A stretch of DNA of 64,000 nt from sequence record NC_048047.1; one strand, written 5' to 3'. A program made the position numbers and the translations under genes. The notes beneath the pieces were generated by a model. The model was not told the origin of the DNA, made no database searches, and saw nothing but the letters and a program-made list of their open reading frames with translations. Positions 46,193 to 62,954 of the stretch are shown here, piece after piece (position 1 is the first letter of the stretch; the number at the start of each line of letters is the position of its first letter).

Positions 46193-46213
46193 CGACAATC
46201 TGGAGCACATCTC

Positions 46214-47455: not shown

Positions 47456-47459
47456 GACC

Positions 47460-47876
47460 ATGACCGGTTACACGATCAAGCTCGAAGTTCAGGTCAACCC
47501 GGCTGACAGCCTGGAGCAGGCGCGCAAGGACGTCGAGACCGCCATTATCAAGGCCGATCTTCCGGCCTGGATGGAATGGATGATCATCGACGCCGCGCCC
47601 CTGGCGCCGGTGATCGCGCCGGCCACGCGCTGGGCGACCTTCGTCGGTCAGGCCTGGATCAACGGCCACACGATGGAAGTGGACGACAGCCGCGTGAGCT
47701 ACGGTGTCACTGACGAGGAGTTTGACGAAAACGGCGGGGACGAGCCGGCCGACTTCGACGCCCTGGCCCAGGCCGCCCGCGCTCCCGACTGGGTGCGCAA
47801 CTGGTCAGGCCCCTTCGACATCTACATCTCGGACATTCCAGACGGGCAGGACCCGGATATTCCGGTTTTCGGCTAA
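47460..47876 (+). CDS. cassette hypothetical protein (acidic)
   Basis: GAGGAGG RBS. Confidence 0.75.
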   Translation: MTGYTIKLEVQVNPADSLEQARKDVETAIIKADLPAWMEWMIIDAAPLAPVIAPATRWATFVGQAWINGHTMEVDDSRVSYGVTDEEFDENGGDEPADFDALAQAARAPDWVRNWSGPFDIYISDIPDGQDPDIPVFG

Positions 47877-47945
47877 GGGTGCAAGAAAGCTGTTGACAGC
47901 ATAACAGCCCTATGCGAGAAAGGGTCATAGCAAGGAGACACCGCT

Positions 47946-48176
47946 ATGACCCCCAACCCGACCGAAGAGGGCAAGGCCGCCGCCCGCCAATGGCTGGCCA
48001 ACTCGACCAGCGAATGGGCGCCCGAGCCCAAGAACCCCTATCGCACCCTGGCCCGGTCGATGACCGCCCGCACCGACGAGGAACGCCGCTGGGACGCGGG
48101 CTATCAGCACATCCTCGACCTGGAATTCCCCGACGACGGCGCCGAGCAGCGCGCCGAACGCGCCTTTGGCTGCTAG
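47946..48176 (+). CDS. cassette hypothetical protein
   Basis: promoter 47893, AAGGAGA RBS. Confidence 0.75.
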   Translation: MTPNPTEEGKAAARQWLANSTSEWAPEPKNPYRTLARSMTARTDEERRWDAGYQHILDLEFPDDGAEQRAERAFGC

Positions 48177-48329
48177 AGAGGTCCGCCGGCTCACCCCGGC
48201 GGACTTTCCACCACCGCCCGGCGTTAACCTTAACGCCGCCTTAAGGTTACCCGCGAAAATAGTGCAAGAAAGCTGTTGACAGCATAGAGGCCCTATGCGA
48301 GAAAGGCTCATCGAAACGGGAGACACCCC

Positions 48330-48839
48330 ATGGACGACACCTATCCGCCCCTGACCCCCGGCCAGCAGGACGCCCTGGTCGCCTTCGCTGACCAGCATGG
48401 CGGCCTGGGCGAGGCCTGGAAGGAAGCCCTCGGCGACGCCTGGAGGACGTGCAGCGAGCCCGAGGCGCTCAAGGCCGACCTGCGGACCATCCGCAACACC
48501 TATGGCCCCTCCTGGCTCTATGATGAATACGCCTGGGGCTGGCGCCCGACCCTGCCGGCCTGGGAGCGCGCCGGGCGCTGGACCGACACCCCGCCCGAGC
48601 CGACGCCGGGCAAGGCCCGCTGGAGCGCCGCCTTCGACCCGCCGGCCATCGGCGAGCGCGTCCGGGTGACCACCAACGGCCTGGGCTGGGCCAAGGTCAC
48701 CGGCTACTTCGTCGAAGGCGACTGGCTGGGCGTGATCGTCAAGCTGGAGGCCCCGGCCGACTGGTATGTCAAACAGAACGGCGGCAACGTCCCCGGCCAC
48801 AGCTTCGGGACCGAGATCGCCCTGACCGACCCCGCGTGA
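48330..48839 (+). CDS. cassette hypothetical protein (two modules, C-terminal SH3-like)
   Basis: promoter 48276; LRTIRNTYGPSWL; PAIGERVRV. Confidence 0.75.
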   Translation: MDDTYPPLTPGQQDALVAFADQHGGLGEAWKEALGDAWRTCSEPEALKADLRTIRNTYGPSWLYDEYAWGWRPTLPAWERAGRWTDTPPEPTPGKARWSAAFDPPAIGERVRVTTNGLGWAKVTGYFVEGDWLGVIVKLEAPADWYVKQNGGNVPGHSFGTEIALTDPA

Positions 48840-49020
48840 CCTGGGCGGCCCTGGCTGGGAGACCAGCCGGGGCGACGCCTTGGCCGGCGCGGTTAACCTT
48901 AAGGCCGCGTTAAGGTTAACCGCCCGCGCCCTCCGCCCGGCGAAAGAAAATGCAAGAAAGCTGTTGACACGCATCCGAGACCTATGCGAGAAAGGCGCAT
49001 CGAACAACGGAGGCCCTTCC

Positions 49021-49863
49021 ATGGCCAAGCTTTTCAGCGATCTCCAAGACCTTGCCACCTCGACCTATGTCGTGCGCATCGTCGACAATGGCGGCGAGAG
49101 CGCCGACCGTTACACGATCGTCACCGCCGATGGCGACTATTACGCCTACAGCGCCAATCCCTCCCATCCCCAAGGCGTGGGCCTGAGCGGCGAGGGCATC
49201 GACCCGCAAGTTCTGGCCGACTGGGTAGAGCGCGGGCAGGCCATCGACCTGACCATCGGCGAACTACCCGAGGGCGCCGCCCGCTGCCTGCTGGCGTCGA
49301 TCAACGCCAGCGTCGAGGACTTCCTGGCCGCTGTCCTGGACCCGACGTCCAACGCCGTGGCCCCGACCCGCGAAAAGGCGGAGATCAACGAGGGCGTCAT
49401 GGATTGCTTCGGCAAGGGCATCTATCGTGTCGGCGAGGGTTTCGCCGTGCGTATGGATGGCATGGACGCGGGCGATGATCGCGGACCGTTCATGACCGCT
49501 GTCGATGCGGTCAAGGCCACCCTCCCCGATGAATACGCCTGGGCGGGCGAGGAATACCTGTCGCCGCGCGACATGACCAAGGTCACGCCCGAAGCCAAGC
49601 CGCTCGTCTTGGTTCACGCCCTGGAGGCCATTCGCGACTATGAATATCAGCGCGACACACCCGGCGCGTTTTTCGACGGCCTGCACAAGGACGACACTGA
49701 CGCGGGCCTGGGCATCGTGCGCCGCACGCGCTACCTGTCCAAGGTCACCGGTGATGCGACCATCGTCGGGCTGATCGGCGAGGCGCCGGCTTTCGCCCTG
49801 GCCCATGCGTGCCTCGACCAACTGTGGACCCTGGCGCAAGAGCGTTGGGAGGCGGGCCAGTGA
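49021..49863 (+). CDS. cassette hypothetical protein
   Basis: promoter 48964; DNGGESADRYTIV, NPSHPQGVG. Confidence 0.8.
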   Translation: MAKLFSDLQDLATSTYVVRIVDNGGESADRYTIVTADGDYYAYSANPSHPQGVGLSGEGIDPQVLADWVERGQAIDLTIGELPEGAARCLLASINASVEDFLAAVLDPTSNAVAPTREKAEINEGVMDCFGKGIYRVGEGFAVRMDGMDAGDDRGPFMTAVDAVKATLPDEYAWAGEEYLSPRDMTKVTPEAKPLVLVHALEAIRDYEYQRDTPGAFFDGLHKDDTDAGLGIVRRTRYLSKVTGDATIVGLIGEAPAFALAHACLDQLWTLAQERWEAGQ

Positions 49864-50099
49864 GCGCCCGCGAACGCCGCGCCCTCGCCGAACTGCTGGC
49901 CCTCTTCCATGCCGTCAATAGCGGCCATGTCAAGGGCCGCAACCCCTACGCCTTCCCGGCCGTCAAGCTCGCCAACGCGGCGTTGACGGGCGATCCGCTG
50001 GACGGGGGATTCCACGTCGCCGAAGCGCTGGACACCCTGCGCACGTCCGATGGCAAGGCGCTGCTATTCGACACCGAATTTCCCGAAGAAAGCGGTTGA
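49860..50099 (+). CDS. cassette hypothetical protein
   Basis: GTGA coupling; stop lies in the next -35 box. Confidence 0.65.
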   Translation: MSARERRALAELLALFHAVNSGHVKGRNPYAFPAVKLANAALTGDPLDGGFHVAEALDTLRTSDGKALLFDTEFPEESG

Positions 50100-50150
50100 C
50101 AGCATAAGGGGCCTATGCGAGAAAGGGTCATCAACGGAGACACCCCGCCC

Positions 50151-50291
50151 ATGTGGACCGACAAGACGTTCAAGACCCGGACCGCCAAGGAGGCCTGGAT
50201 CGCCCGCAACGAAGACCGCTATCAGATCGTCGAGATCGTGGTCTGCAACGCTTACGGCGTGTCCTACAAGCCCCTGCGACGCGTCTACTAG
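50151..50291 (+). CDS. 46-aa cassette protein
   Basis: promoter 50096, GGAGACACC RBS; translated by hand. Confidence 0.65.
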   Translation: MWTDKTFKTRTAKEAWIARNEDRYQIVEIVVCNAYGVSYKPLRRVY

Positions 50292-50302
50292 GAGACCCGC
50301 CC

Positions 50303-50494
50303 ATGATCCCCGACTCGGTCCGCAACCCCAAGGACCACTGGACCCCCATCGCCACCCGCGCCGAGGCGGACGCCCTGGCCTTCCGCTACAACCAAGACGA
50401 CGACGGCCCCGGCCTCTACGAGGTCCACGAAAAGGGCGCGACCTTCGCCATCGCCTACTATGACGAAGACGGCGTGTTCTGCGCCTACGTCTAG
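50303..50494 (+). CDS. cassette hypothetical protein
   Basis: AGGAGA RBS, terminator after. Confidence 0.7.
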   Translation: MIPDSVRNPKDHWTPIATRAEADALAFRYNQDDDGPGLYEVHEKGATFAIAYYDEDGVFCAYV

Positions 50495-50683
50495 CCGTCA
50501 CCTCGTCACCTTGAAGGCCGGCGCCGCTCTCCTGGCGCCGGCCTTTTCTTTGCGCCCGGCCGCCCGGTTAATCTTAAGGCGGCGTTAAGGTTAACCCGCC
50601 GCATCCCGCCCTGATGCAAAAAACCTGTTGACACGCATGGAAGCCCTATGCGAGAAAGACGACGAACACGGGAGACACCCCTT

Positions 50684-51688
50684 ATGACCACCGCCACCAT
50701 CGCCGGCGCCGAACACACGATGATCGGACAAGCCGCCTACCGCTCCACCCAGCGCCCGCATCAAGTGCAGGACATGGCCTATGGCGCGTTCCCGGCCGCC
50801 ACGTCGGACTCGCCCTTCGCCGTCAAGCCTGCCTGCGGCAAGACCCCGAGCGCGCGCGTGCTGGAGGACTTCGACCCCGCCGACGTCTTCACCATCAAGC
50901 CGCGTGATCGCGGCGACGGCTTCCTTGCGGTCGCCAACTTCGGCGGCTCTGAGGTGTCGTGGATCAGCGTCGCCGGCTATGGCGACACCGAAGACGCCGC
51001 GCGCGCCAACCTCATGGCCAAGTTCATCGACGATCGCGACGGCAAGAGCAAGTTTGGCCCCCATGAGCCGCTCAAGGGCTATGACTGGTCCTATAAGCTG
51101 GCGCCCTATTGGGACATGCTGGAGCGCGAGGCCGCCATTCGCCAGCCCTTCAAGCGCACGCTCTACCTGGGCAAGCTGAAGTCGGGCCGCCCCAATCCCA
51201 AGGGCTTTGACGTGTTCGTCGATGTCGAATGGACCGGCGAGCGCCTGAGTCTGTCGGGCGTCATCGGCCCCAAGGCCAATGGCAACGCCTGGGGCGGCTG
51301 TGGTCAGATCGTCGGCAGTCTTGCGCGCAAGGACTTTCTGGAGTTCGCCCCGTCCTGGCATTATGGCTCGGCCCTTGACGGTCTGGTCAAGGCCTGGACC
51401 CGCTGGCACCTGAACGACATGCGCGCCGGCACGCCTCGCCAGCAAGAACACCTGCGAGGCTATCAGGCCAAGCGCAACATTGAGCAGGCCAAGGCCGCCG
51501 GCGCCCACCATCTCGACGCCACCCGCGCCGAACTGGCGCGCGTCCATCTGGAGCCCGACACCTGGGAGCGCCGCAACGGCCGGCCCTATAGCTACGGCTC
51601 CGCATGGTTGCGCGAGGAGGTCCCCACCTTCGTTCTCGACTTCCTGCGCAATCTCCCCGCCCCCGTCAAAACCAGCCCCTGGAGGTAA
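50684..51688 (+). CDS. cassette hypothetical protein
   Basis: promoter 50628; WTRWHLNDMRAGT, YSYGSAWLREEVP. Confidence 0.8.
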   Translation: MTTATIAGAEHTMIGQAAYRSTQRPHQVQDMAYGAFPAATSDSPFAVKPACGKTPSARVLEDFDPADVFTIKPRDRGDGFLAVANFGGSEVSWISVAGYGDTEDAARANLMAKFIDDRDGKSKFGPHEPLKGYDWSYKLAPYWDMLEREAAIRQPFKRTLYLGKLKSGRPNPKGFDVFVDVEWTGERLSLSGVIGPKANGNAWGGCGQIVGSLARKDFLEFAPSWHYGSALDGLVKAWTRWHLNDMRAGTPRQQEHLRGYQAKRNIEQAKAAGAHHLDATRAELARVHLEPDTWERRNGRPYSYGSAWLREEVPTFVLDFLRNLPAPVKTSPWR

Positions 51689-51695
51689 CCCGCCC

Positions 51696-52130
51696 ATGGC
51701 CATCAACACCGCCGGCCTCGTCGGCAAGCTCAAGGAAGCCCTGGCCAGCGCGCCGAACCTGACCCTTTGGGCCAAGGAACGCGGCCTCTTCCACCAGAAC
51801 GTTTCGGCCGCCGCGCGCGGCGACACCGTGCCGCAAGACAGCATCGCCAAGGCCCTGGGCTATCGGCGCGTCCACGTCCAAGCCTATCTGGCGCCCGGCG
51901 AGGCCCTGCCGCTTCTGCCGCCCGGCTGGGAGGAAGTGGTTCCGGGCTCGGCGACCCCGGTCGACTGGAAGCCGCGCGACAAGACCGCCGAGCCGGCTCA
52001 TCGCCGCGTTGGCTCGCCTGAGCAAATGGCGCGCGCCCGCTCGCTTCGCCGGCAGGAAGACCCCGAGGCCGTGGCGGCGGTGCAGGAAGCCCTTGCCGAC
52101 GCCAAGGCCAAGCTGCGAAAAACCGGTTGA
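51696..52130 (+). CDS. Cro/XRE-like HTH protein
   Basis: GGAGG RBS; LTLWAKERGLFHQNVSAAARGDTVPQDSIAKALGY. Confidence 0.6.
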   Translation: MAINTAGLVGKLKEALASAPNLTLWAKERGLFHQNVSAAARGDTVPQDSIAKALGYRRVHVQAYLAPGEALPLLPPGWEEVVPGSATPVDWKPRDKTAEPAHRRVGSPEQMARARSLRRQEDPEAVAAVQEALADAKAKLRKTG

Positions 52131-52181
52131 CAGCATAAGGCGGCTATGCGAGAAAGGCTCATCACTTTCTGGAGCAAGCCC

Positions 52182-52391
52182 ATGGCCGCCTTCCTGATCA
52201 ACACCGATCTCAACGCCCTGGTCGAGGACATCGCCTATGACGTCGAGATGGAAGACCGCGCCGCCGAGGAACTCGATGGCATGGACTTTGGCGACCGCTG
52301 CTATTACGGCGACCGCGCCTATCATGGCCAGCTTGAGCTTGCCCGGATCATCGAAGCGGCCACCGCCGCCCATCCCATCCTGTACGCCTAG
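52182..52391 (+). CDS. cassette acidic hypothetical protein
   Basis: promoter 52127. Confidence 0.7.
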   Translation: MAAFLINTDLNALVEDIAYDVEMEDRAAEELDGMDFGDRCYYGDRAYHGQLELARIIEAATAAHPILYA

Positions 52392-52406
52392 CAGAGGAGG
52401 CGCCGC

Positions 52407-52619
52407 TTGACCCGTTACCGCACCGACTACAGCCAAGACGACGGCAAGACCGTCATTATCGAGGAAGGCCTGACCCGGACCGAGGCCATGCAAAAGGCCG
52501 CGATCCTGTCGCGCAAGCACGGGACCGCCTACGCCGTCGCCTCCGACGACAAGGGCCGCGACACTGGCCAAAGGGTCTATGCTGACGGCCGGTTCAGCTA
52601 CCAAGACGACAAGTTCTAA
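52407..52619 (+). CDS. cassette hypothetical protein
   Basis: GAGGAGG RBS, TTG start. Confidence 0.7.
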   Translation: MTRYRTDYSQDDGKTVIIEEGLTRTEAMQKAAILSRKHGTAYAVASDDKGRDTGQRVYADGRFSYQDDKF

Positions 52620-52778
52620 GGCAAGAGGCCCGGAGCGATCCGGGCCTCTTGTCTGTCCCGAGCCGCCCGTTAACCTTAACCCCCTGGGACGGGGCGTTAA
52701 CCGAACAATCTGCAAGAAACCTGTTGACACGCATCTGAGGCCTATGCGAGAAAGGCTCATCGAACAACGGAGGACGTC

Positions 52779-53486
52779 ATGTCCAAAACGTCTATTGATC
52801 CTGTGATCGCCCAAGCCCTCGCCGAACTGCGCCAAGGCCCGGTCATGGTCGATCATGGCCCCCAAGACCGCACCCAAGTCGTGAGCTTCGGCGCGACCCA
52901 AGCCCGGATGGCCAATGTCGCCCTCACGATCGAACAAGCCCTGTCGCAAAGCCCCGCGCCCTACGCCCTGGGCTGGTTGCTGGTCACTGAATATGACCGC
53001 CTGGGCGACAATTGGGGTGGCTTTCTGGGCGGCCCTCTCGATGAGGGGCAAACCCTCAAGGACGCTGACGAGGTGCTGGCGTGGTTCCGCGCCACCTTCC
53101 CCGAGGACCCGGAAGGCTTTGCCGGGCAGATGGCCGGCGCCCTGCCCAATGACGAGACCCGCGCCAAGATCGAAGCCGGCTACGCCGAGGCCCTGGCCAT
53201 CAAGGACACGGTCGCGCCCCTGGCCAATATCGGTTCGGCCGAGGCGGTCGCCGACATGATGTCCACCATGTTCGGCTCTGCTGTCAACGCTGCTCAGGCC
53301 CTGGGCTATCTCGTCACCACCCTGGGCGCGGGCCGCTTCGGCGTCACCCATGACGACGGCGCCACCCTGGCCACGCGCCTGGAAATCGACCACCCGACCC
53401 AAGAGGCCGCCGCCCGCGCCGCCCTGGTCTACCATGTCCAGCACCTGCAAGCCGACACCCTGGCGCTGGCCAATCTGAAGGACTGA
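52779..53486 (+). CDS. cassette hypothetical protein
   Basis: promoter 52724, GGAGGA RBS. Confidence 0.75.
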   Translation: MSKTSIDPVIAQALAELRQGPVMVDHGPQDRTQVVSFGATQARMANVALTIEQALSQSPAPYALGWLLVTEYDRLGDNWGGFLGGPLDEGQTLKDADEVLAWFRATFPEDPEGFAGQMAGALPNDETRAKIEAGYAEALAIKDTVAPLANIGSAEAVADMMSTMFGSAVNAAQALGYLVTTLGAGRFGVTHDDGATLATRLEIDHPTQEAAARAALVYHVQHLQADTLALANLKD

Positions 53487-53488
53487 CC

Positions 53489-54115
53489 ATGACCGCCGCC
53501 GCCTCTCTCTTCGAACAAGCCCAGATCGAAGCCGCGCAAGCCGCGATCGATCTCAACACCGCCAAGGTCGGGCTGGAAACCGAGGACTCCAGCCCTGGAA
53601 CCGACCTCTTCCACCTGCTGGGCTCGCTGCTGACCTGGGCGGACGCCTGGGGCGTGGACTTCGACGACATCCTGTCTCAGGTCCGCGAGCCGGTGAACGT
53701 CACCACGACCCTGACCCGCAATGATCCGGCGACCTATGGCCAAGATCAGCGGTTCGCCGCCATCCTGGCCAATCTCGACCAGCGCAATACCCCTTCCGTG
53801 CCGGTCCTGACCCGTGATGAGGCCGAAACCGAGGCCATGCGCGATCTCGCCGCCGTGGTCGGCAAGGTGATCAAGGTCCACGACATCACCGGCTATTTCG
53901 GCGAGACGGGCCAAGAGGACTTGCGCCCCCATGAAGGCGCGCCGGCCTTTTCGGTGATCGTCCTGCCGTCTGAGCGCGGCGATGTCATCCACTGGAATGA
54001 CGAGCATCTGGACGTGCGCTGGAACGTCACCCCCGCGCCGGGCGAAACCCGCCTCTATGAACTGCGCTCGCTGTGGGTGTTTGGGCGCGGCTACGTCGTC
54101 GAGAAGGAGGGCTAA
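53489..54115 (+). CDS. cassette hypothetical protein
   Basis: AAGGA RBS; DLFHLLGSLLTWAD. Confidence 0.75.
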   Translation: MTAAASLFEQAQIEAAQAAIDLNTAKVGLETEDSSPGTDLFHLLGSLLTWADAWGVDFDDILSQVREPVNVTTTLTRNDPATYGQDQRFAAILANLDQRNTPSVPVLTRDEAETEAMRDLAAVVGKVIKVHDITGYFGETGQEDLRPHEGAPAFSVIVLPSERGDVIHWNDEHLDVRWNVTPAPGETRLYELRSLWVFGRGYVVEKEG

Positions 54116-54118
54116 GGC

Positions 54119-54439
54119 ATGGCCATGCCCCTGGGCTTGCGGACCACCGCCACGAGCTACGCCATCGACGTGGATGATGACCAGTTCCTGGCCATGATCC
54201 AGGCCGAGAGCTACAAGGGCGGCGACTTCGAACCGACCCTGTTCGACAAGCTGCAAAAGACCGACGCCCGCGACATCGAGTATAACGGCCACTTCGGCGC
54301 GTCCGTCTATTTCACCCTCAACGAGGAGGACGACACGCCCGCCCTCCGCGCCGAACTCGCCCGGCTGATCGCCGAACACCTCACCCTCTGTGTCGCCCAC
54401 ATGGCGACCTACGACAAGGACGCGCCCGATGCTGACTGA
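54119..54439 (+). CDS. cassette acidic hypothetical protein
   Basis: GGAGG RBS; DIEYNGHFGASVYF. Confidence 0.75.
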   Translation: MAMPLGLRTTATSYAIDVDDDQFLAMIQAESYKGGDFEPTLFDKLQKTDARDIEYNGHFGASVYFTLNEEDDTPALRAELARLIAEHLTLCVAHMATYDKDAPDAD

Positions 54440-54728
54440 GGCCTCCATTCGTCTCGCCCCGTCCGACCTGCAAACGACCTTCGTCGTGGTCGGCAAGGTG
54501 CATCTGCATTTCTTCCTGACCACCCTGGTGGGCTTTCGCTGTCCGCGCCTGGGCGCGGTGCGCAACCCCGAGGGCCACAACGCCGGCGCCCGCGCCAAGG
54601 CCCATCTCCAGGCCCTGGGCTACTACGCCGAGGGCACGGGTAAAACCGCCACCGAAGAAGACTTTCAGCGCCTCGCCATGGCCGCGCTCGCCGGCTCCAG
54701 TGGTCCTGACTATCTCCTGTTGAGATAA
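54429..54728 (+). CDS. cassette hypothetical protein
   Basis: AAGGA RBS, overlap. Confidence 0.65.
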   Translation: MLTEASIRLAPSDLQTTFVVVGKVHLHFFLTTLVGFRCPRLGAVRNPEGHNAGARAKAHLQALGYYAEGTGKTATEEDFQRLAMAALAGSSGPDYLLLR

Positions 54729-54844
54729 GACCGCCTCCCACGTCTAGGGCTGTCACGAATCCCCCCATCTATGACAGCCCAGACGCCCGTTTAGTCTTCC
54801 CTGTACTCTATTGCGCCAGTATCGGCGCGGAAAGTGATGCGCCT

Positions 54845-54907
54845 ATGAAGCTCCTCGAAGGTGGCGGACTGCTGGCCCTGTGCTTCCTTTTCTGGCTCCT
54901 CCACTGA
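54845..54907 (+). CDS. 20-aa hydrophobic peptide MKLLEGGGLLALCFLFWLLH (copy 1)
   Basis: same protein sequence as 58497..58559 with only synonymous differences. Confidence 0.75.
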   Translation: MKLLEGGGLLALCFLFWLLH

Positions 54908-54971
54908 CAAGGCTGTTGACAGCATAAAGGCACTATGCGAAAAGGGGTCATCGCCACCGGAGACACCCGCG

Positions 54972-55238
54972 ATGACCGAATATGACGACTACGGCCAAGA
55001 CGCCTATTTCGACCACCTCCACGATCAGGCCGTCGATGAGGCTTTCGAGCGCCACGCCGACGACGCCTATGAGGACGACCTAGGCGACGAGGACCCCGAC
55101 CTCGAAATCCCCGATGAGGAAGACGAGGAGGAGGGCCTTCGCCGGGCCGAAGGGCTCATGCCCTGGGCGACCCCCGAAGGCGTCGAGCCTGGGCAGTTCC
55201 CGCGCCGGGCCTATGACGACGACGAAATCCCGTTCTGA
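54972..55238 (+). CDS. 88-aa highly acidic protein with SSB-like C-terminal tip (DDDEIPF)
   Basis: promoter 54916; about 33 of 88 residues D/E; ends YDDDEIPF. Confidence 0.75.
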   Translation: MTEYDDYGQDAYFDHLHDQAVDEAFERHADDAYEDDLGDEDPDLEIPDEEDEEEGLRRAEGLMPWATPEGVEPGQFPRRAYDDDEIPF

Positions 55239-55444
55239 TCTCCTCCCTTCGAAAGGCCCCGCGCGGGCCTTTCTTTTTGCCCCGCGCCTGGGGTTAACCT
55301 TAAGGCGGCGTTAAGGTTAACCCGGACCATTTTTCGTCTTTTGTGTCGGGCCATTTTTCGCTTTTCGTGTCGAGGTGCAAGAAAGCTGTTGACAGCATAA
55401 AAGCCCTATGCGAGAAAGGCTCATCGCAACCAAGGAGCCCGACC

Positions 55445-55636
55445 ATGGGTCTCAAGATCGAAATCGACACCGGCAACGACGCCTTTCAGGGTGTGGCCGG
55501 CGAGCACTGCGCCAGCCTCCTGCATGAGGTGGCCCGCAAGCTCGACCAAGGCGCCCGCGCCGGCAATATCTACGACGGCAACGGCAACAAGGTCGGGACC
55601 TACGAACTCGACCACACCGACGCCCCGGAGTCGTAA
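55445..55636 (+). CDS. cassette conserved phage protein
   Basis: promoter 55389; KIEIDTGNDAF...YDGNGNKVG. Confidence 0.75.
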   Translation: MGLKIEIDTGNDAFQGVAGEHCASLLHEVARKLDQGARAGNIYDGNGNKVGTYELDHTDAPES

Positions 55637-55639
55637 GCC

Positions 55640-55963
55640 ATGGCCTATTTCGACGTCATCACCACGGTGCGCGTTGAGGTCGAGGACATCCCCGATCTCT
55701 TCGCCGCCGCCCTGGCGCGCGCGGTCAAGGACGGCATGGAAGAGGGCGACGCCCGCGACCTGCTGACCAACTCCGACCCCCTGGGCCGCCCCGACATCAA
55801 GTCGTGCCTGATCATGCTGTTTGATCCGGGCGTGAGCCCGGACGGCACGTCGATCAGCGGCACGGAAGTCCAGCGCCCCGACATGGACGAAGACGACGCC
55901 ATGGACGCCTACGAGGACGCCCACGGCGAAGACGAGGAAGGCGACGGCGATGACGAGGACTAA
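55640..55963 (+). CDS. cassette acidic protein
   Basis: D/E-rich tail. Confidence 0.7.
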   Translation: MAYFDVITTVRVEVEDIPDLFAAALARAVKDGMEEGDARDLLTNSDPLGRPDIKSCLIMLFDPGVSPDGTSISGTEVQRPDMDEDDAMDAYEDAHGEDEEGDGDDED

Positions 55964-56300
55964 GGGCAAGTCGCGCGTTCCCCAACGCCTGCTGATCGCC
56001 AGTCGGCCGACCCTGGTCGCCGGCCCCTCGCCAGCCACCCGCCGCCACTGGTGGGACCTTCTGGACAGCGCGGGCCACCCGCGCGACCTTGAGGCCCTGC
56101 TGGTCGTCACCATCGACCAAGACGCGGCCGAAACCGTCGTCGCGGTCCTGCCGCTCGCCGCCGCCGACTACAGCGAAGAAGCCGTCAAGGCTGACGCCCT
56201 GGTCGCCGCCCACACCCGCCCCCGCAGCCCTGGCAAGCGCGACGCGCTCAACGCCTATGTGCTGCATGTCAATGACCCCCATGCGGAGCATCAACCGTGA
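55950..56300 (+). CDS. cassette hypothetical protein
   Basis: overlap coupling. Confidence 0.6.
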   Translation: MTRTKGKSRVPQRLLIASRPTLVAGPSPATRRHWWDLLDSAGHPRDLEALLVVTIDQDAAETVVAVLPLAAADYSEEAVKADALVAAHTRPRSPGKRDALNAYVLHVNDPHAEHQP

Positions 56301-56755
56301 GCTATTCCGGCCCGATCACCATTTCGCAAGGCCTGCGCTGGCGCCTCGATAGCTACGGCAACGGCGCGGCCTATGCCTTCTATGACCTGTCGGCCGGCGC
56401 CAGCGTCTGGCTTGAAGGCGACGACGCCACCACGTTCCGCGACGACTACGACAACGCCGAAAAGCGCCGGCCGCAAGACGAGCCTGACGAGATTATGGGC
56501 CATCTGTGGCATGATCACGAATACGGCGCCGCCGCCAAGGTCCGGGCCGTCACCGTGCGCCGGATCATCCGCGAAGACACCGTGATCCTGTTGCGCCCCG
56601 GCGAGAGCGAGGCCGACGCCAAGGAACGGGCGATCTTCAATCAATCCTCGCTCAAGTGGGACACCTACGATTGCGAGTATAGCGCCGACGCCGCCGAGGA
56701 CGCCCCCGCCGAGGAATACGCCTATCTGCTGACCGGCCACCCCTGCGCCATCTAA
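56297..56755 (+). CDS. cassette acidic hypothetical protein
   Basis: GTGA coupling; YGNGAAY, VWLEGDDA. Confidence 0.7.
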   Translation: MSYSGPITISQGLRWRLDSYGNGAAYAFYDLSAGASVWLEGDDATTFRDDYDNAEKRRPQDEPDEIMGHLWHDHEYGAAAKVRAVTVRRIIREDTVILLRPGESEADAKERAIFNQSSLKWDTYDCEYSADAAEDAPAEEYAYLLTGHPCAI

Positions 56756-56898
56756 GCCAAGGCCCGCCCCTCCCTTCAGGCAAGGAAGGCGGCGGGCCTT
56801 GCCCTGGGCGATCGCGGTTAACCTTAACGTGCAAGAAATCTGTTGACACGCATTGAGGCCATATGCGAGAAAGGACCACCGCAACGGGAGAGACCCCC

Positions 56899-57207
56899 AT
56901 GACTGCCCAAGCCGTTCTGACCGCCCGCCTTGACCGCGCCGTCGCCGTGATCTCTGGCGACATCCCCAAGAGCCGGCGCAAGGTGCGCAAGGCCCGCCGC
57001 GCCTTCCAGCGCGCCCTGGAAGGGATGGACATCCCGACCTATGTGGCGTGGATCAACCACCCCGACTCGTTCATCGCCCTCACCGACGATGTCGAGCACT
57101 GGGCGCAAAGCGGGATCACCACCGCCGCCCAACTGGGCGCCTATCTCGACGGCTGCGCCCGCCATGAGGCCCGCAAGGACTTGATGAGCGGCTACCTCGA
57201 CGACTAG
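56899..57207 (+). CDS. cassette hypothetical protein
   Basis: promoter 56843. Confidence 0.7.
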   Translation: MTAQAVLTARLDRAVAVISGDIPKSRRKVRKARRAFQRALEGMDIPTYVAWINHPDSFIALTDDVEHWAQSGITTAAQLGAYLDGCARHEARKDLMSGYLDD

Positions 57208-57301
57208 GCGGCAAAAAGGCCCGTCCCCTGGTGGGGCGGGCCTTGTCCTGTCCGATCGGGATTAACCTTAACGCGAGATTAAGGTTAACGCAGCCTTAAG
57301 G

Positions 57302-57544
57302 TTAAGTGGCGTTCTTGCGCGTCGTGGCCTGGGGATTGGCCTTCAACCATGCGTCGGCTTCCGTCCGGGTCGAGAACGGCGCCCCGCCAATGCCCTGCGT
57401 CCCGTCGTCCCATTGGATGGTCCAACCCACGTTCTTGATTTCCCAATCTTCGGCCACGCCGTGGGGGATCGGGGCGTGTACGCCAATACGGGTAAACGGC
57501 GCCCGCTTCAGTTGACGGACACGCGCCGGGATCACTTGCGGCAT
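57302..57544 (-). CDS. inverted cassette hypothetical protein
   Basis: AGGA RBS on minus strand; own leftward promoter; WTIQWDDG...FSTRTEADAWL. Confidence 0.65.
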   Translation of the reverse strand: MPQVIPARVRQLKRAPFTRIGVHAPIPHGVAEDWEIKNVGWTIQWDDGTQGIGGAPFSTRTEADAWLKANPQATTRKNAT

Positions 57545-57597
57545 TTCAGGGATTTCCTATTGACAAAGGCCTTGCCCCATGGGCGGCCCGAAAGGCG

Positions 57598-57625
57598 ACT
57601 GTATCAAGCGGCGCCGCCGTGTCAA
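57598..57625 (-). promoter_or_regulatory. leftward promoter
   Basis: TTGACA-N16-TACAGT on the minus strand. Confidence 0.6.
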
Positions 57626-57725
57626 GAAACGCGACACAGACTGAGAAAGCGGTTGACACGCATCTAAGCCCTATGCGAGAAAGATCAGGCACGGCGCACC
57701 CCCGCGCCCCTGGGAGACACCCCGC

Positions 57726-58496
57726 ATGGACCTGACCACGTTTTCGGCCTCGGCTGAATTTGTTCTCTGCAACAAGCCGGTGAAGATCACCGTCAAGCCC
57801 GCCGGCCGACCGCTCTACCTGTCGTTTTCCATCGAACAGATCGGCATGATCGGCGGTAGCGACGAATTGATGAGCGAGGCCGAACAACACGACGTTGAGG
57901 ACTTGGTGACGGTCTTGACCATCGCCGACGTCCTGTCCCTCAAGCCCATCGAGACCTATAACGACGAAGACCGCGACGCCGTCGAGAGCGTGCGCTATGC
58001 GCTGATCATGCTCAACGGCGAGCGCTACGCTTCGGCCGTCGCGTTCGAGGATGTCGGCGAGGCCGATTTTTCCAATCGCGACGACACCATTGACACCCGC
58101 CAAATCGTCGAGCGGGTCGAGGTGCTTCGGAGCGCCCTGGAGACGGCCGGCGTCGAGACCGGCGACCTCGCCGCCCTGGAAGCCCTCGACGAAGAAGAGG
58201 CCGTGACGGACCAAGACCAGCGCGAGACCTTCAACGAGATTCGCGAGGAATATCTGATCCTGGCGCGCATGGTCGAGGAGGGCGCCAACTACGGCGAGGA
58301 TTGGACGTTCGGCGCCACCCTGGTCCGCGAATCCTACTTCACCGAGTTCGCGCAAGAAGAGTGCGAAAGCCTGGGCTACATCGCCAAGGACTTCCCGTCG
58401 TGGATTTCCATCGACTGGGAAAAGACCGCCAACACGATGAAATCCGACTATACCGAAATCGACTTTGACGGCGTGAGCTACTACGTTCGCGCCTAG
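57726..58496 (+). CDS. ArdA-like antirestriction (DNA-mimic) protein
   Basis: very acidic; C-terminal ESYFTEFAQEECESLGYI...PSWISIDWEKTA...DYTEIDFDG. Confidence 0.55.
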   Translation: MDLTTFSASAEFVLCNKPVKITVKPAGRPLYLSFSIEQIGMIGGSDELMSEAEQHDVEDLVTVLTIADVLSLKPIETYNDEDRDAVESVRYALIMLNGERYASAVAFEDVGEADFSNRDDTIDTRQIVERVEVLRSALETAGVETGDLAALEALDEEEAVTDQDQRETFNEIREEYLILARMVEEGANYGEDWTFGATLVRESYFTEFAQEECESLGYIAKDFPSWISIDWEKTANTMKSDYTEIDFDGVSYYVRA

Positions 58497-58559
58497 GTGA
58501 AGCTCCTCGAAGGCGGCGGCCTGCTCGCGCTCTGCTTCCTCTTCTGGTTGCTTCATTAA
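58497..58559 (+). CDS. 20-aa hydrophobic peptide (copy 2)
   Basis: GTG directly after the upstream TAG; terminator after. Confidence 0.75.
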   Translation: MKLLEGGGLLALCFLFWLLH

Positions 58560-58656
58560 CCCCGGCCGGCGTCCATGACCTGGGCGCCGGCCTTTTCTTT
58601 GCGCCGCGATCGGGGTTAACCTTAAGGCGGCGTTAAGGTTAACGGCGGGCCTGGGA

Positions 58657-58752
58657 GGAAAGGCGTCAAGGCCGCGAGCTAGGATTACACGCGATGGCTT
58701 AGCCGGCGTCCAGCCGGCGGCGCCTTCGACCACCGCGAGGCGGCCTTGACCC
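58657..58752 (-). ncRNA. candidate ~95-nt structured small RNA
   Basis: minus-strand TTGACA-N15-GCGAGAT promoter (58785-58758); 11-bp closing stem 58665-75/58740-50; nested stems; no evident ORF. Confidence 0.45.
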
Positions 58753-58871
58753 TCGTAATCTCGCCGACCCGTCGCCCGGTGTCAACCGTTTTCTTTCTCC
58801 AAGAATTCTGTTGACACGCATCGAAGCCCTATGCGAGAAAGGGTCATCTTCAACGCCTGGAAAGAAAATCC

Positions 58872-59528
58872 ATGCCCCGCACCGTCACCAAACAGGTCTT
58901 CACGTTCAAGGAGTTGAACGACAAGGCCAAGGCCAAGGCTATCGAGTGGTATCGCGGCCTCAACGACCAAGACTCCGGTTGGTGGGAGTTCGTCTATGAC
59001 GAAGCCGACCGCATCGCCGACGCCTTCGGGATCACCCTGCGCCGCAAGGAAGCCGGCAAGCCCAATAGCGGCCCGGACATCATGTTCACCGGCTTCTGGA
59101 GTCAAGGCGACGGCGCCTGTTTCCAAGGTCGCTACGAGTCGCCCCAAACCCCGGCCGTCGAAGCCTTCGCCGCCCTGGGAATCGAAGACGACACGCTCAA
59201 GGCTCTGGCCGCCCGTCTGGACGCTCTGAGCGCCAAGGTTCGCCTGATCACCACGGTCAAGCACTCTGGCCACTACTACCACGAGTATTGCACCGACTTC
59301 GAAACCGAACGCATGGTTCCCGACGAAGCCGGCGACGCCTTCGACCCTTACGACTTCGAGCACGAAGACGAAAAGGAACTGATCGACATTCTGCGCACCT
59401 TCATGAAGTGGATTTATCGCCAGCTTGAAGTCGTCGAGGAAGACCGCAATTCCGACGAAACGATCAGCGAATATCTGACCGACTCTGATTACGAGTTCGA
59501 GGCGGACGGCTCGCCGACCAACGACTAA
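58872..59528 (+). CDS. conserved acidic protein (FWSQGDG family)
   Basis: promoter 58811; VFTFKELNDKAKAKAIEWYR, FTGFWSQGDGACF. Confidence 0.75.
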   Translation: MPRTVTKQVFTFKELNDKAKAKAIEWYRGLNDQDSGWWEFVYDEADRIADAFGITLRRKEAGKPNSGPDIMFTGFWSQGDGACFQGRYESPQTPAVEAFAALGIEDDTLKALAARLDALSAKVRLITTVKHSGHYYHEYCTDFETERMVPDEAGDAFDPYDFEHEDEKELIDILRTFMKWIYRQLEVVEEDRNSDETISEYLTDSDYEFEADGSPTND

Positions 59529-59700
59529 GCCAAGCCCGCCGCGCCCGGCCTTTTCGCCGGGCGCGTGTCGGGTTTTGGTTTTCCAAGGTCTTGTTAAGGT
59601 TAACGAAAAAAGCCCTCCAGCGACCTGAGAAACTGCAAGAAAAATGTTGACTGCATCCAAGCCCTATGCGAGAAAGGCTCATCGCAACGGGAGACACCCC

Positions 59701-59988
59701 ATGACGACCCCGACCAAGAAGCGCCGCAAGCGCTACCCGCCCAAGAGCGACGCGGCTAAGGCTCGCGCCGCCGCCAAGAGCAAGGCGTTCTTCGCCAAGC
59801 ACGCGCTCAAGGCCACCGAGGCCACGATCGCCGCCATGAAGGCCGGCGACCAAAAGGCCGTCCAACGCCACGCCAAGGACGCCCGGCGCCTGAACCGCTG
59901 GATGATCCACAAGCGCGACATCGCCGCCGCCTTCGCGGCCCTTTTCGACCTGCGCGCCGCGCGCCTCGCCCTGGAGCTTGCCGCATGA
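59701..59988 (+). CDS. cassette basic protein
   Basis: promoter 59647; K/R/A-rich. Confidence 0.7.
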   Translation: MTTPTKKRRKRYPPKSDAAKARAAAKSKAFFAKHALKATEATIAAMKAGDQKAVQRHAKDARRLNRWMIHKRDIAAAFAALFDLRAARLALELAA

Positions 59989-60200
59989 CCCGTCGCCCTG
60001 CCTATCTGACCGTCCTGGGCGGTATCGGCCTCATCCTCGCCAGCCTCGCGCTTTCGGCCGCCAGCGCCCCGGAAAAGCGGGTTCTCGTGGGTCAATACTG
60101 CGACGGCGACCTTGTGCGCCTCTACGGCCTGGAAGACGGCGAGGAAGCGGCCGAGGCCTGCGCCATCGTCGAAGTCCACGCCCTGCCCAAGGGCCTTTGA
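59985..60200 (+). CDS. small exported or membrane protein
   Basis: ATGA coupling; signal-like N-terminus. Confidence 0.65.
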   Translation: MTRRPAYLTVLGGIGLILASLALSAASAPEKRVLVGQYCDGDLVRLYGLEDGEEAAEACAIVEVHALPKGL

Positions 60201-60202
60201 CC

Positions 60203-60541
60203 ATGGAACGCCTCAACGTTCACGTGCTGACCATCACCTATGACAGCGGCAACCCCGTCCCGCCGTTTGTCGCTCTGGCCATGTCCAAGGAGGAGCTTGA
60301 CGACAACCTGCAAGCCAAGGCGCGCGAGGAAGTCGAAAACCTCTATTTCGAGGAAGACGACCTCTTTGACGACCTCGCCAAGGTCCTGACCGCCGAACGC
60401 GTCGCCGAGCTTCAGCCCCTGGGCCTGGACGCCATCGGCCTCCTGACCCCGGTCGAAGTCGTCACCATGGCCAAGCAATTTGCGTCGATCACGCCAAGCT
60501 TTGACGTGCTTCCGCTCTACCTCGAATCGACCCCGACCTGA
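60203..60541 (+). CDS. cassette acidic hypothetical protein
   Basis: ORF in cassette. Confidence 0.7.
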   Translation: MERLNVHVLTITYDSGNPVPPFVALAMSKEELDDNLQAKAREEVENLYFEEDDLFDDLAKVLTAERVAELQPLGLDAIGLLTPVEVVTMAKQFASITPSFDVLPLYLESTPT

Positions 60542-60621
60542 CGCAAGAAAGCTGTTGACAGCATAATTCGCCTATGCGAGAAATGACTGTCAACGGCGAT
60601 TCCCGCCGCATGGAGACACCC

Positions 60622-60966
60622 ATGAAGCTGATCAAACACGACGTTCTCGACCACGGCCGCGCCTCGACCCTGCGCAACGCCCTGGGCACGGCCCTGGAAC
60701 GATACGCCGAAATCGCCAAGGACTTCGAAGGCTACGCCATCGAATACGCGGCCCTGGACGAGGCGGGCAAGCAAGCCTGGAAGGCCACCAATAGCTGGAT
60801 CAATCCGCGCGCCCTGCCGGACCTGAAAAAGCAATTCGAGCGCCAAGTCACCGAGGTGCAAGACCTCATCGACTGGCTGGACGGCGACAAATTCCAAGAC
60901 GAAAACGGTCAATACCCGGAAAACACCGAGTTCACCGTCGTCGCCGGCCTGATCCGCGACTTCTAA
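60622..60966 (+). CDS. cassette hypothetical protein
   Basis: promoter 60555, GGAGACACC RBS. Confidence 0.75.
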   Translation: MKLIKHDVLDHGRASTLRNALGTALERYAEIAKDFEGYAIEYAALDEAGKQAWKATNSWINPRALPDLKKQFERQVTEVQDLIDWLDGDKFQDENGQYPENTEFTVVAGLIRDF

Positions 60967-61161
60967 ACGCCCTGGCCAAGGCCCGCCCTCACGGCGGGCC
61001 TTTTCCTTGACCCCGCGCCGCTGTTAACCTTAACGTGCAAACGTTCGCCGATTAACCTTAACGAGACATGTCCGTTCCGTTAACCCTGTCGTGCAAAAAA
61101 GCTGTTGACTCGCATCCAAGCCCTATGCGAGAAAAGGCCATCAGCAACGGGAATGACCCCC

Positions 61162-61572
61162 ATGACCAAACCCGAAATGACCCCGGAAGAACGTCGAGCC
61201 CAGCTTGACGACATGCTCAAAATCTGGCGCGAGCGCGTCGAGACCGCCAAGCAACGCCTGTCGATCAACGTCCTGGTCGGCCGAGGCTTCCTCTGCGTCC
61301 TGGAGCGCGAGCCCAGCGGCATGGCCATCGGCCCGACCGAGGATGACAAGGGCTGGCGCCTTGTGGCCATGAACCCCTGGTTCACCGGCTGCGTCAAATG
61401 GGCCAAGGCCGACGCCGAACAAGTCGCCGCGCACTGGAACGCCAACCTCACCGGCGACGCGGCCCTCTACTGCGTGGTCAAGGTCATGCACTATCGCGCC
61501 GTCCTCGAAGAGATGGTCACCAAAGGCGAGGAGATGATCGCCTTCATGGAAGACCGCTATAAGGCCGCCTGA
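61162..61572 (+). CDS. cassette hypothetical protein
   Basis: promoter 61105; alternative start at 61153. Confidence 0.7.
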   Translation: MTKPEMTPEERRAQLDDMLKIWRERVETAKQRLSINVLVGRGFLCVLEREPSGMAIGPTEDDKGWRLVAMNPWFTGCVKWAKADAEQVAAHWNANLTGDAALYCVVKVMHYRAVLEEMVTKGEEMIAFMEDRYKAA

Positions 61573-61760
61573 TCTTGACGCCCTCCGGCTCCGGCCGGAG
61601 GGTTAATTTTTGGTCGACCCGGCGTCAAGGTTAACGCGCTCCAGCCTGGGGTTAACCTTAACCCGCAACCGTTTGCACGTTAACCATTTGGCGCAAGAAA
61701 CCTGTTGACACGCATTTCTGTCCTATGCGAAAAGAGGCCATCCAATCAACGGAGGCCCGC

Positions 61761-62417
61761 ATGGCCAGCCCTGAAGATATCGCCATCGTCCAAGCCGCGC
61801 CGGTCAGTTTCGACCTCGAAGCGTGGGAGGAAGAAAACGGCCAATATGCCCAAGACCACTGGCGCCACCTCAACTACGCCTTTGAGATCAAGGGCTATAA
61901 GCACATGTTCACGCAAGATCAGCGCGCCGCCGCCGATCGCCTGATCGCCGAATATGAGGAAGCCCAAGACGACCACCGCGAAACCTACCGCGCCGAAAGC
62001 GACGCCGTTTTCTGGGCGGCCGACGCCTTCGCTCGCCAGTACATCGGCACGGCGCTCTGGACGGGCGTTAGCTACCCCATGGGCGATGATCGCGGCGGAA
62101 GCGACAGCTACTATGACGGCGAATCGGCCTGGATCACGCCCAAGACCCTGCGCGAGATGATCGAAGATTGCGACGCCTTCCAGCGCGACAACGTCGCCGC
62201 CCTGGCCAAGGCCTATGCGTCTGACGTCTGGATCGAAGGCGAGCGCTACAACGCCAGCAACGCCGGTCACGATTTTTGGTTGACCCGCAACGGTCACGGC
62301 GTCGGCTTTTGGGATCGTGGCCTAGGCGAGGTCGGCGAGACCCTTTCCGAAGCCGCCCGCAAGGTCGGAGAATACAGCCTAGCCCTTGACGACAACGGCG
62401 AAATCAGCCGCATGTAA
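61761..62417 (+). CDS. conserved phage protein (GHDFWLTRNGHG family)
   Basis: promoter 61705; AGHDFWLTRNGHGVGFWDR. Confidence 0.8.
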   Translation: MASPEDIAIVQAAPVSFDLEAWEEENGQYAQDHWRHLNYAFEIKGYKHMFTQDQRAAADRLIAEYEEAQDDHRETYRAESDAVFWAADAFARQYIGTALWTGVSYPMGDDRGGSDSYYDGESAWITPKTLREMIEDCDAFQRDNVAALAKAYASDVWIEGERYNASNAGHDFWLTRNGHGVGFWDRGLGEVGETLSEAARKVGEYSLALDDNGEISRM

Positions 62418-62579
62418 CCCCGGCAAAGGCCCGCTTGACAGCGGGCCTTTTTCGTGCCTGCGCCTGGGGTTAACCTTAACGCCACCCCGCTCCGCCTTAA
62501 CGCTCTTTTCTGCAAGAAAACAGTTGACTCGCATCCGCGCCCCATGCGAGAAAAGGTCATCAACCACGGAGCGCGGCAC

Positions 62580-62954
62580 ATGGCCAAGCAAGAACAACTT
62601 GAAATCGCCCTGGTCCTGCTGGACGAGCACAAGGCCAAGATCGGCGCCCCTCGCGCCTTCACCTACGGCGAAGTCATCGAGGCGTACCGCGACGCGGGCG
62701 CCCTGATCAGCGCCGAGGTCCGCTTGCAGCGGATCGCCGAAAACGAGTGCAACGGCTACCGCGACGAGACGGCCGAAAAGCTCGATGAGCGCCGCCGTCA
62801 GACCCTCGAAGCCAAGGCCGGCGAAATCGCCAAGCGCTACGGCGTGGCCCTGACGTTCGGCGGCGACCCGCGCGGATCGGCCCTCAAGATCAAGACCCCG
62901 CACACGGGCCGTTACAACGGCTTTGGCGGGCGTGAGGATGGATGGGCCGTCTAG
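62580..62954 (+). CDS. conserved phage protein (GDPRG family)
   Basis: promoter 62524; LQRIAENECNG, FGGDPRG. Confidence 0.75.
   Translation: MAKQEQLEIALVLLDEHKAKIGAPRAFTYGEVIEAYRDAGALISAEVRLQRIAENECNGYRDETAEKLDERRRQTLEAKAGEIAKRYGVALTFGGDPRGSALKIKTPHTGRYNGFGGREDGWAV

Follow-up and report, generated by a model that had tools for sequence, protein, structure and literature searches.

The window analysed here, a stretch of 64,000 nucleotides, is the final 64 kb of the record of Caulobacter phage CcrBL9 (MH588546.1, 322,272 bp), a jumbo phage of the genus Bertelyvirus whose host is Caulobacter vibrioides CB15; by megablast, positions 50000-60000 match this record with 100% identity. From ~41.7 kb onward, the window holds the right copy of a direct terminal repeat of 22,260 bp. 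Positions 54972-55238 on the + strand, within this repeat, correspond to CcrBL9_gp023 (AXQ69047.1), which is annotated as a "hypothetical protein"; because it is located in the terminal repeat, gp023 is present twice per genome. A search of the whole window against Rfam gave no match, and a plasmid origin was considered and rejected (no megablast match). The gene, the portions of its product, and the elements that flank it are as follows:

54903-54971, + strand: promoter-like cassette, 5' leader, and ribosome-binding site of gp023, recognized by motif repetition and by conservation in homologs
54972-55238, + strand: gp023 coding sequence, with ATG at 54972, TGA at 55236-55238, and 88 codons
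54972-55136, + strand: N-terminal polyacidic region, residues 1-55, with 26 D/E and 1 R, predicted to be helical
55137-55235, + strand: invariant C-terminal 33 residues, comprising an LRRAEGLMPW island, a Pro/Gly-rich linker, and the tip
55215-55235, + strand: SSB-type tip DDDEIPF, whose last six residues are those of the SSB of C. vibrioides T5M6
55251-55278, + strand: intrinsic-terminator-like hairpin of 9 bp, 6 of them GC pairs, followed by TTTTT
55294-55320, no strand assigned: perfect palindrome TTAACCTTAA-N7-TTAAGGTTAA, with a CtrA box (TTAA-N7-TTAA) inside

An earlier note on this DNA, made from the letters alone, had described a product of 88 residues, about 33 of them D or E, that ends in YDDDEIPF, and the open reading frame agrees with this description in every respect: there are 18 D and 15 E (33 acidic residues in all) alongside 5 R, 3 H, and no K, giving a net charge of -28 at pH 7, and the YDDDEIPF sequence is followed directly by the stop codon, leaving a free C-terminal Phe. 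No other protein of the repeat is as acidic as gp023, which carries -32 charges per 100 residues. The runner-up, gp025, carries -24, and the majority of the other repeat proteins carry 0 to -15. Since most repeat proteins are acidic, the acidity of gp023 is partly a regional trend. Paralogy is not apparent, as BLASTP gives no similarity for gp023 against gp025 or for several acidic repeat proteins of 190-256 aa.

The N-terminal polyacidic region (residues 1-55) is interspersed with aromatic residues at positions 4, 7, 12, 13, 25, and 33. The remaining residues, 56-88, read LRRAEGLMPWATPEGVEPGQFPRRAYDDDEIPF. Within this portion, residues 66-81 form a Pro/Gly-rich, predicted coil that is short and invariant, unlike the typically variable linkers of SSBs. 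Searches against Pfam, PHROGs, NCBIfam, and the defence systems of PADLOC yield no match to gp023, and neither phmmer nor a profile search against the sequences of all PDB chains returns anything, even at E = 10. In particular, the OB-fold domain for ssDNA binding and oligomerization that defines the bacterial SSB family (PF00436) is absent from gp023 by Pfam, NCBIfam, and PHROGs, and the ssDNA-binding domains of the gp2.5-like, Enc34-like, and mini-SSB families are not found in it by Pfam, PHROGs, or phmmer. AlphaFold2, run with a three-sequence alignment of the family, gives a model of low confidence (mean pLDDT 58, pTM 0.20) in which the tertiary structure is unreliable; it contains helices at residues 5-35 and 49-60, coil over the last 28 residues, and no beta strands. 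Because there is no family or PDB match and the predicted model is strand-free, an OB fold in gp023 can be considered excluded, as far as the tools used can tell, and the earlier note's statement that the protein has no recognizable folded core and no OB fold holds. With a charge this negative (-28), DNA binding by gp023 is ruled out.

The region upstream of gp023 contains a 25-nt cassette, TTGACAGCATAAAGGCACTATGCGA, that begins at 54916. It includes a TTGACA (54916-54921), which is a -35 element of host type, and a conserved CTATGCGA (54933-54940), and it is followed by a GGAG (54959-54962). When up to 3 mismatches are allowed, the cassette is present in 9 copies between 44.6 and 63.6 kb, all on the + strand, while shuffled sequences give an expectation of 0. 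Alignment of the nine copies reveals conservation that starts ~13 nt upstream of the TTGACA and continues via a common leader to the GGAG, which in every copy lies a few bases 5' of an ATG. The cassette is also conserved 5' of the gp023 homologs in CcrSC, BL47, and L005 (a metagenomic contig described below). A generic σ70 scan calls no promoter here, and no canonical TATAAT-like -10 element is present at the usual spacing. Thus, the cassette is best termed promoter-like rather than a proven promoter, a designation that is based on its repetition. Downstream, the terminator-like hairpin lies 13 nt past the gp023 stop codon, and the homologs in CcrSC, BL47, and L005 have an equivalent hairpin and T-run. 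The earlier note had credited the gene with its own promoter and terminator; the nine-copy cassette, the GGAG, and the hairpin with its T-run largely bear this out, while the cassette itself is without a canonical -10 element and goes undetected in the σ70 scan.

The palindrome TTAACCTTAA-N7-TTAAGGTTAA follows the gp023 terminator and precedes the next promoter cassette (55389); the repeat contains 9 copies of it, versus 0 expected. In phiCbK-like phages, it has already been published that CtrA sites are concentrated in the terminal repeats, are bound by CtrA, and regulate the repeat genes (PMC9437464). Given its own cassette, its hairpin, and the neighbouring palindrome with a CtrA box, gp023 is a monocistronic unit in a host-regulated region. 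We infer that it is expressed early.

Homologs of gp023 are confined to a narrow group. A tblastn search of 50,697 phage records detects gp023 in the 11 Bertelyvirus records and in no others; a word-indexed search of 5.8 billion proteins returns the Bertelyvirus family plus one Logan contig (L005, from SRR27946880); and an HMMER profile search of 1.84 billion representatives finds nothing credible beyond these, the one further match being weak and of low complexity. Identity to gp023 is 90% for the CcrSC protein and 82% for the group formed by BL47, C1, C2, J4, and RB23. All of the Bertelyvirus homologs keep DDDEIPF, and the C-terminal 33 residues are 100% identical among CcrBL9, CcrSC, and the BL47 group. 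In the corresponding final 33 codons, the three lineage pairs show 0 nonsynonymous differences against 2, 7, and 5 synonymous ones, while replacements are tolerated in the middle 41 codons (pN 0.05-0.18, pS 0.21-0.39). This pattern of codon changes points to strong purifying selection on the gp023 tail. As the family comprises one phage genus and one metagenomic contig, the conservation spans a shallow divergence (mostly 82-90% identity).

The relative on contig L005 is more divergent. The called gene, P0003, is 61% identical to gp023, and its HMMER match is confined to residues 1-56. P0003 contains one frameshift, which may be either an assembly error or a real loss, and this places the tip out of frame in the called gene. 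The other frame of the same strand reads ...VMPWGFTNPDGLPPGYLPRNSFHGDDDEIPF and then a stop codon. Since this frame encodes both the MPW island and the tip, both are retained in L005, with a linker of different sequence and length. L005 likewise conserves the promoter cassette, the terminator, and the palindrome that flank the gene. The earlier note had made its reading of gp023 depend on conservation of the tip in homologs; because the Bertelyvirus homologs keep the tip and L005 encodes it in another frame, the reading comes through this comparison. Within these alignments, gp023 contains three separately conserved islands: an N-terminal acidic-aromatic predicted helix, an LRRxEGxMPW segment, and the tip.

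The bacterial SSB-Ct motif consists of an acidic run followed by I-P-F at the extreme C-terminus with a free carboxylate, and has the sequence DDDIPF in E. coli. The gp023 C-terminus has precisely this form, D-D-E-I-P-F-COOH, and as in SSB it is preceded by further acidic residues; the Pro/Gly-rich segment before these may correspond to the flexible linker of SSB. Scanning species-representative genomes for a GC-rich coding of LDDEIPF-stop gives 120 loci, almost all of them from alphaproteobacteria and with ORFs that are mostly 140-200 aa long; they include one contig of Caulobacter vibrioides T5M6 and several genomes of Phenylobacterium and Caulobacteraceae. A canonical SSB (PF00436, E 4.8e-37) with a Gly-rich linker is encoded by the C. 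vibrioides ORF (L245:3082-3612, 177 aa). This SSB ends ...PRESFSADLDDEIPF (SADLDDEIPF), while gp023 ends ...FPRRAYDDDEIPF (RAYDDDEIPF), so that 6 of the 6 terminal residues are identical, the SSB being that of strain T5M6 and not of the laboratory host CB15. The 18 nt that encode these six residues are also identical in gp023 and the T5M6 SSB gene. Otherwise the two proteins are unrelated in sequence: BLASTP aligns only the last ~12 residues and finds no other similarity. The earlier note had called this type of tip common in alphaproteobacteria. Indeed, besides matching the C. vibrioides SSB, LDDEIPF is the commonest alphaproteobacterial SSB tail, present as the C7 motif of SSB in 5795 out of 18,841 assemblies from alphaproteobacteria (PMC13490951).

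Among the six-frame ORFs of CcrBL9, an SSB-type tip terminates only three, all of which are annotated genes: gp023, gp116, and gp372. By chance, 2.8e-4 DEIPF endings would be expected genome-wide (2564 six-frame ORFs, each with its own composition). The gp116 protein (record positions 52345-52803) is an HNH endonuclease (PF01844) that ends ...EEDEIDFDADEIPF (DADEIPF). In CcrBL9, CcrSC, and BL47, gp116 has a common acidic, Pro-rich extension of ~38 residues that bears the tip. Its HNH homologs from sister genera (those of phiCbK, CcrRogue, and Brevundimonas phage Kabachok) have short, basic tails without a tip, and the tip was thus added to the HNH enzyme within Bertelyvirus. The gp372 protein (record positions 237151-237582; 143 aa) has no assigned function and ends ...EPLDDEIPF; its AlphaFold2 model (pLDDT 46) is too poor to be read for an OB-like fold. 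CcrSC keeps the gp372 tip. The 43%-identical homolog of the J4 group reads ...EDHIPFE, and consequently the terminal Phe is not strict in every tip-bearing protein. Judged by these comparisons, the tip is behaving as a portable module in Bertelyvirus.

No SSB is annotated in the CcrBL9 genome. When 14 SSB-type queries (the E. coli and C. vibrioides SSBs, T7 gp2.5-like and Enc34-like proteins, the phrog_9002 and phrog_378 types, and mini-SSBs) are compared by phmmer with all CcrBL9 ORFs of at least 40 aa, nothing is found at E = 10, at the sensitivity of single-sequence searching. Since an SSB is neither annotated nor detectable, CcrBL9 probably works with the SSB of its host. Of its own, CcrBL9 has a T7-like DNA polymerase (gp188), a RecD-like helicase (gp195), and an exonuclease of the DnaQ/RNase_T type (gp190).

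Tips of this kind are not restricted to Bertelyvirus. A scan of IMG/VR for DDDEIPF-stop and DDDIPF-stop finds at least 119 loci for each. Among the matches listed, tips are present on non-canonical SSBs (PF21265, T7-type; phrog_112, gp2.5-like; PF10991, Enc34-type; phrog_9002; and phrog_378) and on mini-SSBs of 74-107 aa (phrog_18154 and phrog_7364). Because many of the short tip-bearing ORFs are mini-SSBs, a short ORF with a tip is not by itself "tail-only". The matches listed also include tips on proteins that are not SSBs, namely a 511-aa primase of the archaeo-eukaryotic type, a primase-helicase resembling DnaB (~604 aa), an SF2 helicase with an intein (927 aa), an AAA_24 protein, and proteins similar to Pam3_Gp34, and on small proteins without an SSB-type match, namely phrog_1811 (a helical family of 73-75 aa with no assigned function) and a 62-aa acidic ORF on contig L069. 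None of the matches listed approaches gp023 in charge.

Given these features, we consider the chances about even that gp023 is a free-standing, tail-only mimic of the C-terminal docking motif of the host SSB. It would be a mostly disordered polyanion that lacks a DNA-binding domain and is produced from its own transcription unit in the repeat. The DDDEIPF tip, with the free carboxylate of its Phe, would insert into the pockets in which genome-maintenance proteins hold the SSB tail. In other bacteria, the proteins that bind this tail include PriA, RecQ, RecO, RecJ, primase, repair polymerases, and nucleases. The polyacidic N-terminal part might add a second contact, either as a mimic of ssDNA or by binding another partner, resulting in a two-site mode in which the tip occupies the pocket while the polyanion lies on an adjacent nucleic-acid-binding surface or on the second partner. 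The net effect would be that the host SSB is outcompeted, although a recruitment of host factors would be equally possible, and the target could also be a replication protein of the phage. Because the conserved helix and LRRxEGxMPW accompany the tip, we favour a two-site mode over a bare tail, and a two-site inhibitor or an adaptor is judged to be as likely as a simple decoy. The earlier note's interpretation is thus partly supported: its premises on the sequence hold, titration of host replication, repair, or defence proteins would be one putative outcome, and its suggested connection with SSB-sensing defences finds no support in these data.

A broader version of this proposal is more tentative, and we regard it as possible but doubtful. 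Here, the host SSB tip would serve the Bertelyviruses as a portable address label, carried by at least three unrelated proteins, and gp023 would imitate SSB-coated ssDNA, with its charge in place of the DNA and its tail in place of the SSB, thereby capturing or redirecting all of the host SSB partners.

Several phage proteins are known to display the docking motif of the host SSB, and gp023 resembles them in this respect. These are the non-canonical SSBs of phages and prophages (PF21265, PF10991, and DUF669; PMC13687109); for the prophage DUF669 SSBs, mimicry of the host tail has been suggested (PMC13687109). However, these proteins have retained a domain for ssDNA binding and function as SSBs, whereas gp023 has none and consequently can only compete or bridge. 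Likewise, unlike bacterial SSB itself, gp023 lacks the OB fold, the tetramerization domain, and the capacity to bind ssDNA, its body being a polyanion instead. SSB-tip mimicry by phage SSBs is thus known, and what would be new here is mimicry of the host SSB tail by a phage protein without a DNA-binding domain. No description of a tip-bearing decoy that lacks such a domain was found in the literature searched, which takes in only a minority of subscription journals.

Other functions for gp023 can be envisaged. It might be an adaptor rather than an inhibitor, with the N-terminal helix and LRRxEGxMPW contacting a protein of phage or host origin and the tip tethering this partner to SSB-partner proteins or to the replisome. 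The presence of three separately conserved islands, rather than the tip alone, fits such a role, as does the finding that the tip on the enzyme gp116 and on gp372 resembles targeting more than titration; furthermore, the primases and helicases that carry tips in IMG/VR are proteins that need delivery to SSB-coated DNA or its partners. However, the N-terminal part of gp023 has no confident fold, and a charge of -28 on a protein of this size is seen more often in nucleic-acid mimics than in adaptors; we consider an adaptor rather unlikely. The charge itself brings to mind the small, very acidic DNA-mimic proteins of phages, such as Ocr, ArdA, Ugi, p56, and Gp5.9, which are products of early genes and occupy the nucleic-acid-binding sites of host enzymes. 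As an anti-restriction or anti-nuclease protein of the Ocr or ArdA type, gp023 would block a DNA-binding groove with its polyanion, and the C-terminal motif would be secondary or would add affinity. Its extreme negative charge, small size, and predicted helices are as expected for this class, and it has a separate promoter-like cassette and is located among the small genes without assigned function of the terminal repeat. Yet gp023 has no similarity in sequence or profile to Ocr, ArdA, or similar proteins in Pfam, PHROGs, or the PDB sequences, and no confident fold; the strongest constraint falls on the less acidic C-terminal third rather than on the polyacidic part; and we know of no protein of this class that ends in an SSB tip. 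A DNA mimic would also leave the exact identity with the host SSB tail unexplained. We judge this role to be improbable.

The tail might instead address the replication machinery of the phage, with gp023, gp116, and gp372 docking on proteins such as gp188, gp195, and gp190. There is precedent for such handles: T7 gp2.5, T7 gp4, and T4 gp32 have acidic C-terminal tails, ending in an aromatic residue in the case of T7, that mediate protein-protein contacts in replication, and in T7 itself the acidic tails of gp2.5 and of the helicase, both ending in Phe, contact the T7 DNA polymerase. CcrBL9 has a T7-like polymerase, the helicase, and the exonuclease; the tip is common to three phage proteins; and with no recognizable phage SSB, it must be the tail of the host SSB that the replisome reads. 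However, the T7 and T4 tails are parts of proteins that bind DNA or act as helicases, and their partners are phage proteins, whereas the gp023 tail copies a host motif exactly, and gp023 lies in the terminal repeat, apart from the replication module (126-148 kb in the record). A tail of this kind appears quite improbable for gp023. It is compatible with gp023 being an SSB mimic, differing only in the target. The least probable explanation is coincidence, in which an acidic filler protein simply happens to end in DDDEIPF and the motif has no role. The motif is only 6-7 residues long, gp023 is rich in D and E, and the repeat proteins are generally acidic, all of which would make a chance match easier. 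Against this, the expectation is ~1e-6 per protein on the composition of gp023 and three endings are observed against 2.8e-4 expected genome-wide; the final 33 codons have no replacements despite synonymous change; the host SSB gene encodes its six terminal residues with the identical 18 nt; and the tip has clearly been grafted onto an HNH nuclease, in Bertelyvirus only. Coincidence is therefore strongly disfavoured and is regarded as very improbable.

If gp023 is indeed a mimic of the SSB tail, the consequences extend beyond this phage. The SSB tail is a hub that organizes more than 12 bacterial proteins of replication, recombination, and repair, and a free-standing SSB tail made by a phage would mean that viruses attack or borrow this hub through motif mimicry alone. 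The tail has already served as a target in antibacterial research, as with the DnaG-SSB interaction (PMC5872125). In addition, gp023 would be a compact natural probe of the SSB interactome in Caulobacter, which is a main model of bacterial cell-cycle and replication control. Should the tip also prove to be a portable label, gp023 would represent a class of short-linear-motif decoys that is new for phages, with phrog_1811 and the 62-aa acidic ORF of L069 as possible analogues.

The presence of host-type tips on phage primases, helicases, an HNH nuclease, and small proteins suggests that the matching of tails between phage and host is a general rule of compatibility. Such a rule could aid in predicting the host of a phage from its sequence, and tail matching is already exploited in RecET recombineering (PMC13490951).

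Nine near-identical, promoter-like cassettes of ~60 nt, all lying on the + strand (window 44603-63656), each stand in front of a gene or a small operon in the terminal repeat. Every copy includes TTGACAGCAT...CTATGCGA together with a common leader and GGAG; the -35 hexamer is perfect in all nine, and a search of these cassettes for a canonical -10 element at the usual spacing found none. A perfect palindrome, TTAACCTTAA-N7-TTAAGGTTAA, is present at nine sites between transcription units (window 46737-63568).

44603, 47893, 48276, 50096, 52127, 54916, 55389, 59647 and 63632, +: cassette starts in the window
55294-55320 and 58616-58642: examples of the palindrome in the window

A CtrA box falls within this palindrome. 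Compared with the published CtrA consensus, TTAA-N7-TTAA (PMC9437464), the palindrome arms in the CcrBL9 repeat are longer, and their conservation beyond TTAA-N7-TTAA is not accounted for by that work.

The same arrangement of promoter, gene, terminator and palindrome that surrounds gp023 in CcrBL9 is found in L005, a 7463-bp contig (logan:SRR27946880) whose source is a Bertelyvirus-like phage that is more divergent and had not been sampled before. The gp023 homolog called in this contig carries one frameshift, with the tip encoded in the other frame.

L005:3856-4212: gp023 homolog gene
L005:3289-3594: DUF8033 gene, adjoining the gp023 homolog

In CcrBL9 itself, a second very acidic small protein, gp025, is encoded two genes downstream of gp023. 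It has a net charge of -25 and ends in a purely acidic run (...DEEGDGDDED); no family was matched in an NCBIfam search, and no similarity to gp023 was found.

Window 55640-55963, +: gp025, 107 aa
L127:5328-7112 (MH588546.1 127588-129375): gp186, annotated as "putative A1 protein"

The pre-early genes of phage T5 are laid out in its terminal repeats. CcrBL9 is reminiscent of this layout in the annotation of gp186, for which a Pfam search gave no match, and in its large terminal repeats packed with small genes.

The 322-kb CcrBL9 genome encodes a T7-like polymerase, a RecD-like helicase and nucleotide metabolism genes. No SSB is annotated across the whole genome (five pieces, L125-L129, plus the window), and none was detected in it with 14 SSB-type single-sequence queries. 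SSB-type tips are present on two other CcrBL9 proteins.

L125:30085-30543 (MH588546.1 52345-52803): gp116, HNH endonuclease, between the portal and capsid genes
L129:14891-15322 (MH588546.1 237151-237582): gp372, 143 aa, function unknown

The gp116 tail (~38 aa) is acidic and Pro-rich and ends in DADEIPF. It has been gained in Bertelyviruses only; the tails that terminate the phiCbK, CcrRogue and Kabachok homologs are basic. The C-terminus of gp372, LDDEIPF, is exactly the host C7 motif, and its J4-group homolog ends in ...EDHIPFE, one residue being added beyond the Phe. The AF2 model of gp372 is too weak to judge an OB-like fold.

Among the IMG/VR matches listed, DDDEIPF or DDDIPF also ends phage primases, primase-helicases, an intein-containing SF2 helicase, an AAA_24 protein and Pam3_Gp34-like proteins (loci L011, L049, L113, L046, L032 and others), which suggests that the host-type tip is used widely as a portable docking label beyond SSBs. 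The matches listed also include a family of acidic, 73-75-aa proteins ending in DDDIPF (L286, L294, L340 and L266); of these, L286, L294 and L266 were compared with PHROGs, and all three matched phrog_1811, of unknown function. This family possibly represents tail-bearing, non-SSB microproteins of unrelated phages, and the product of L069:585-770 (62 aa, charge -14.5, C-terminus DDDEIPF) could be another.
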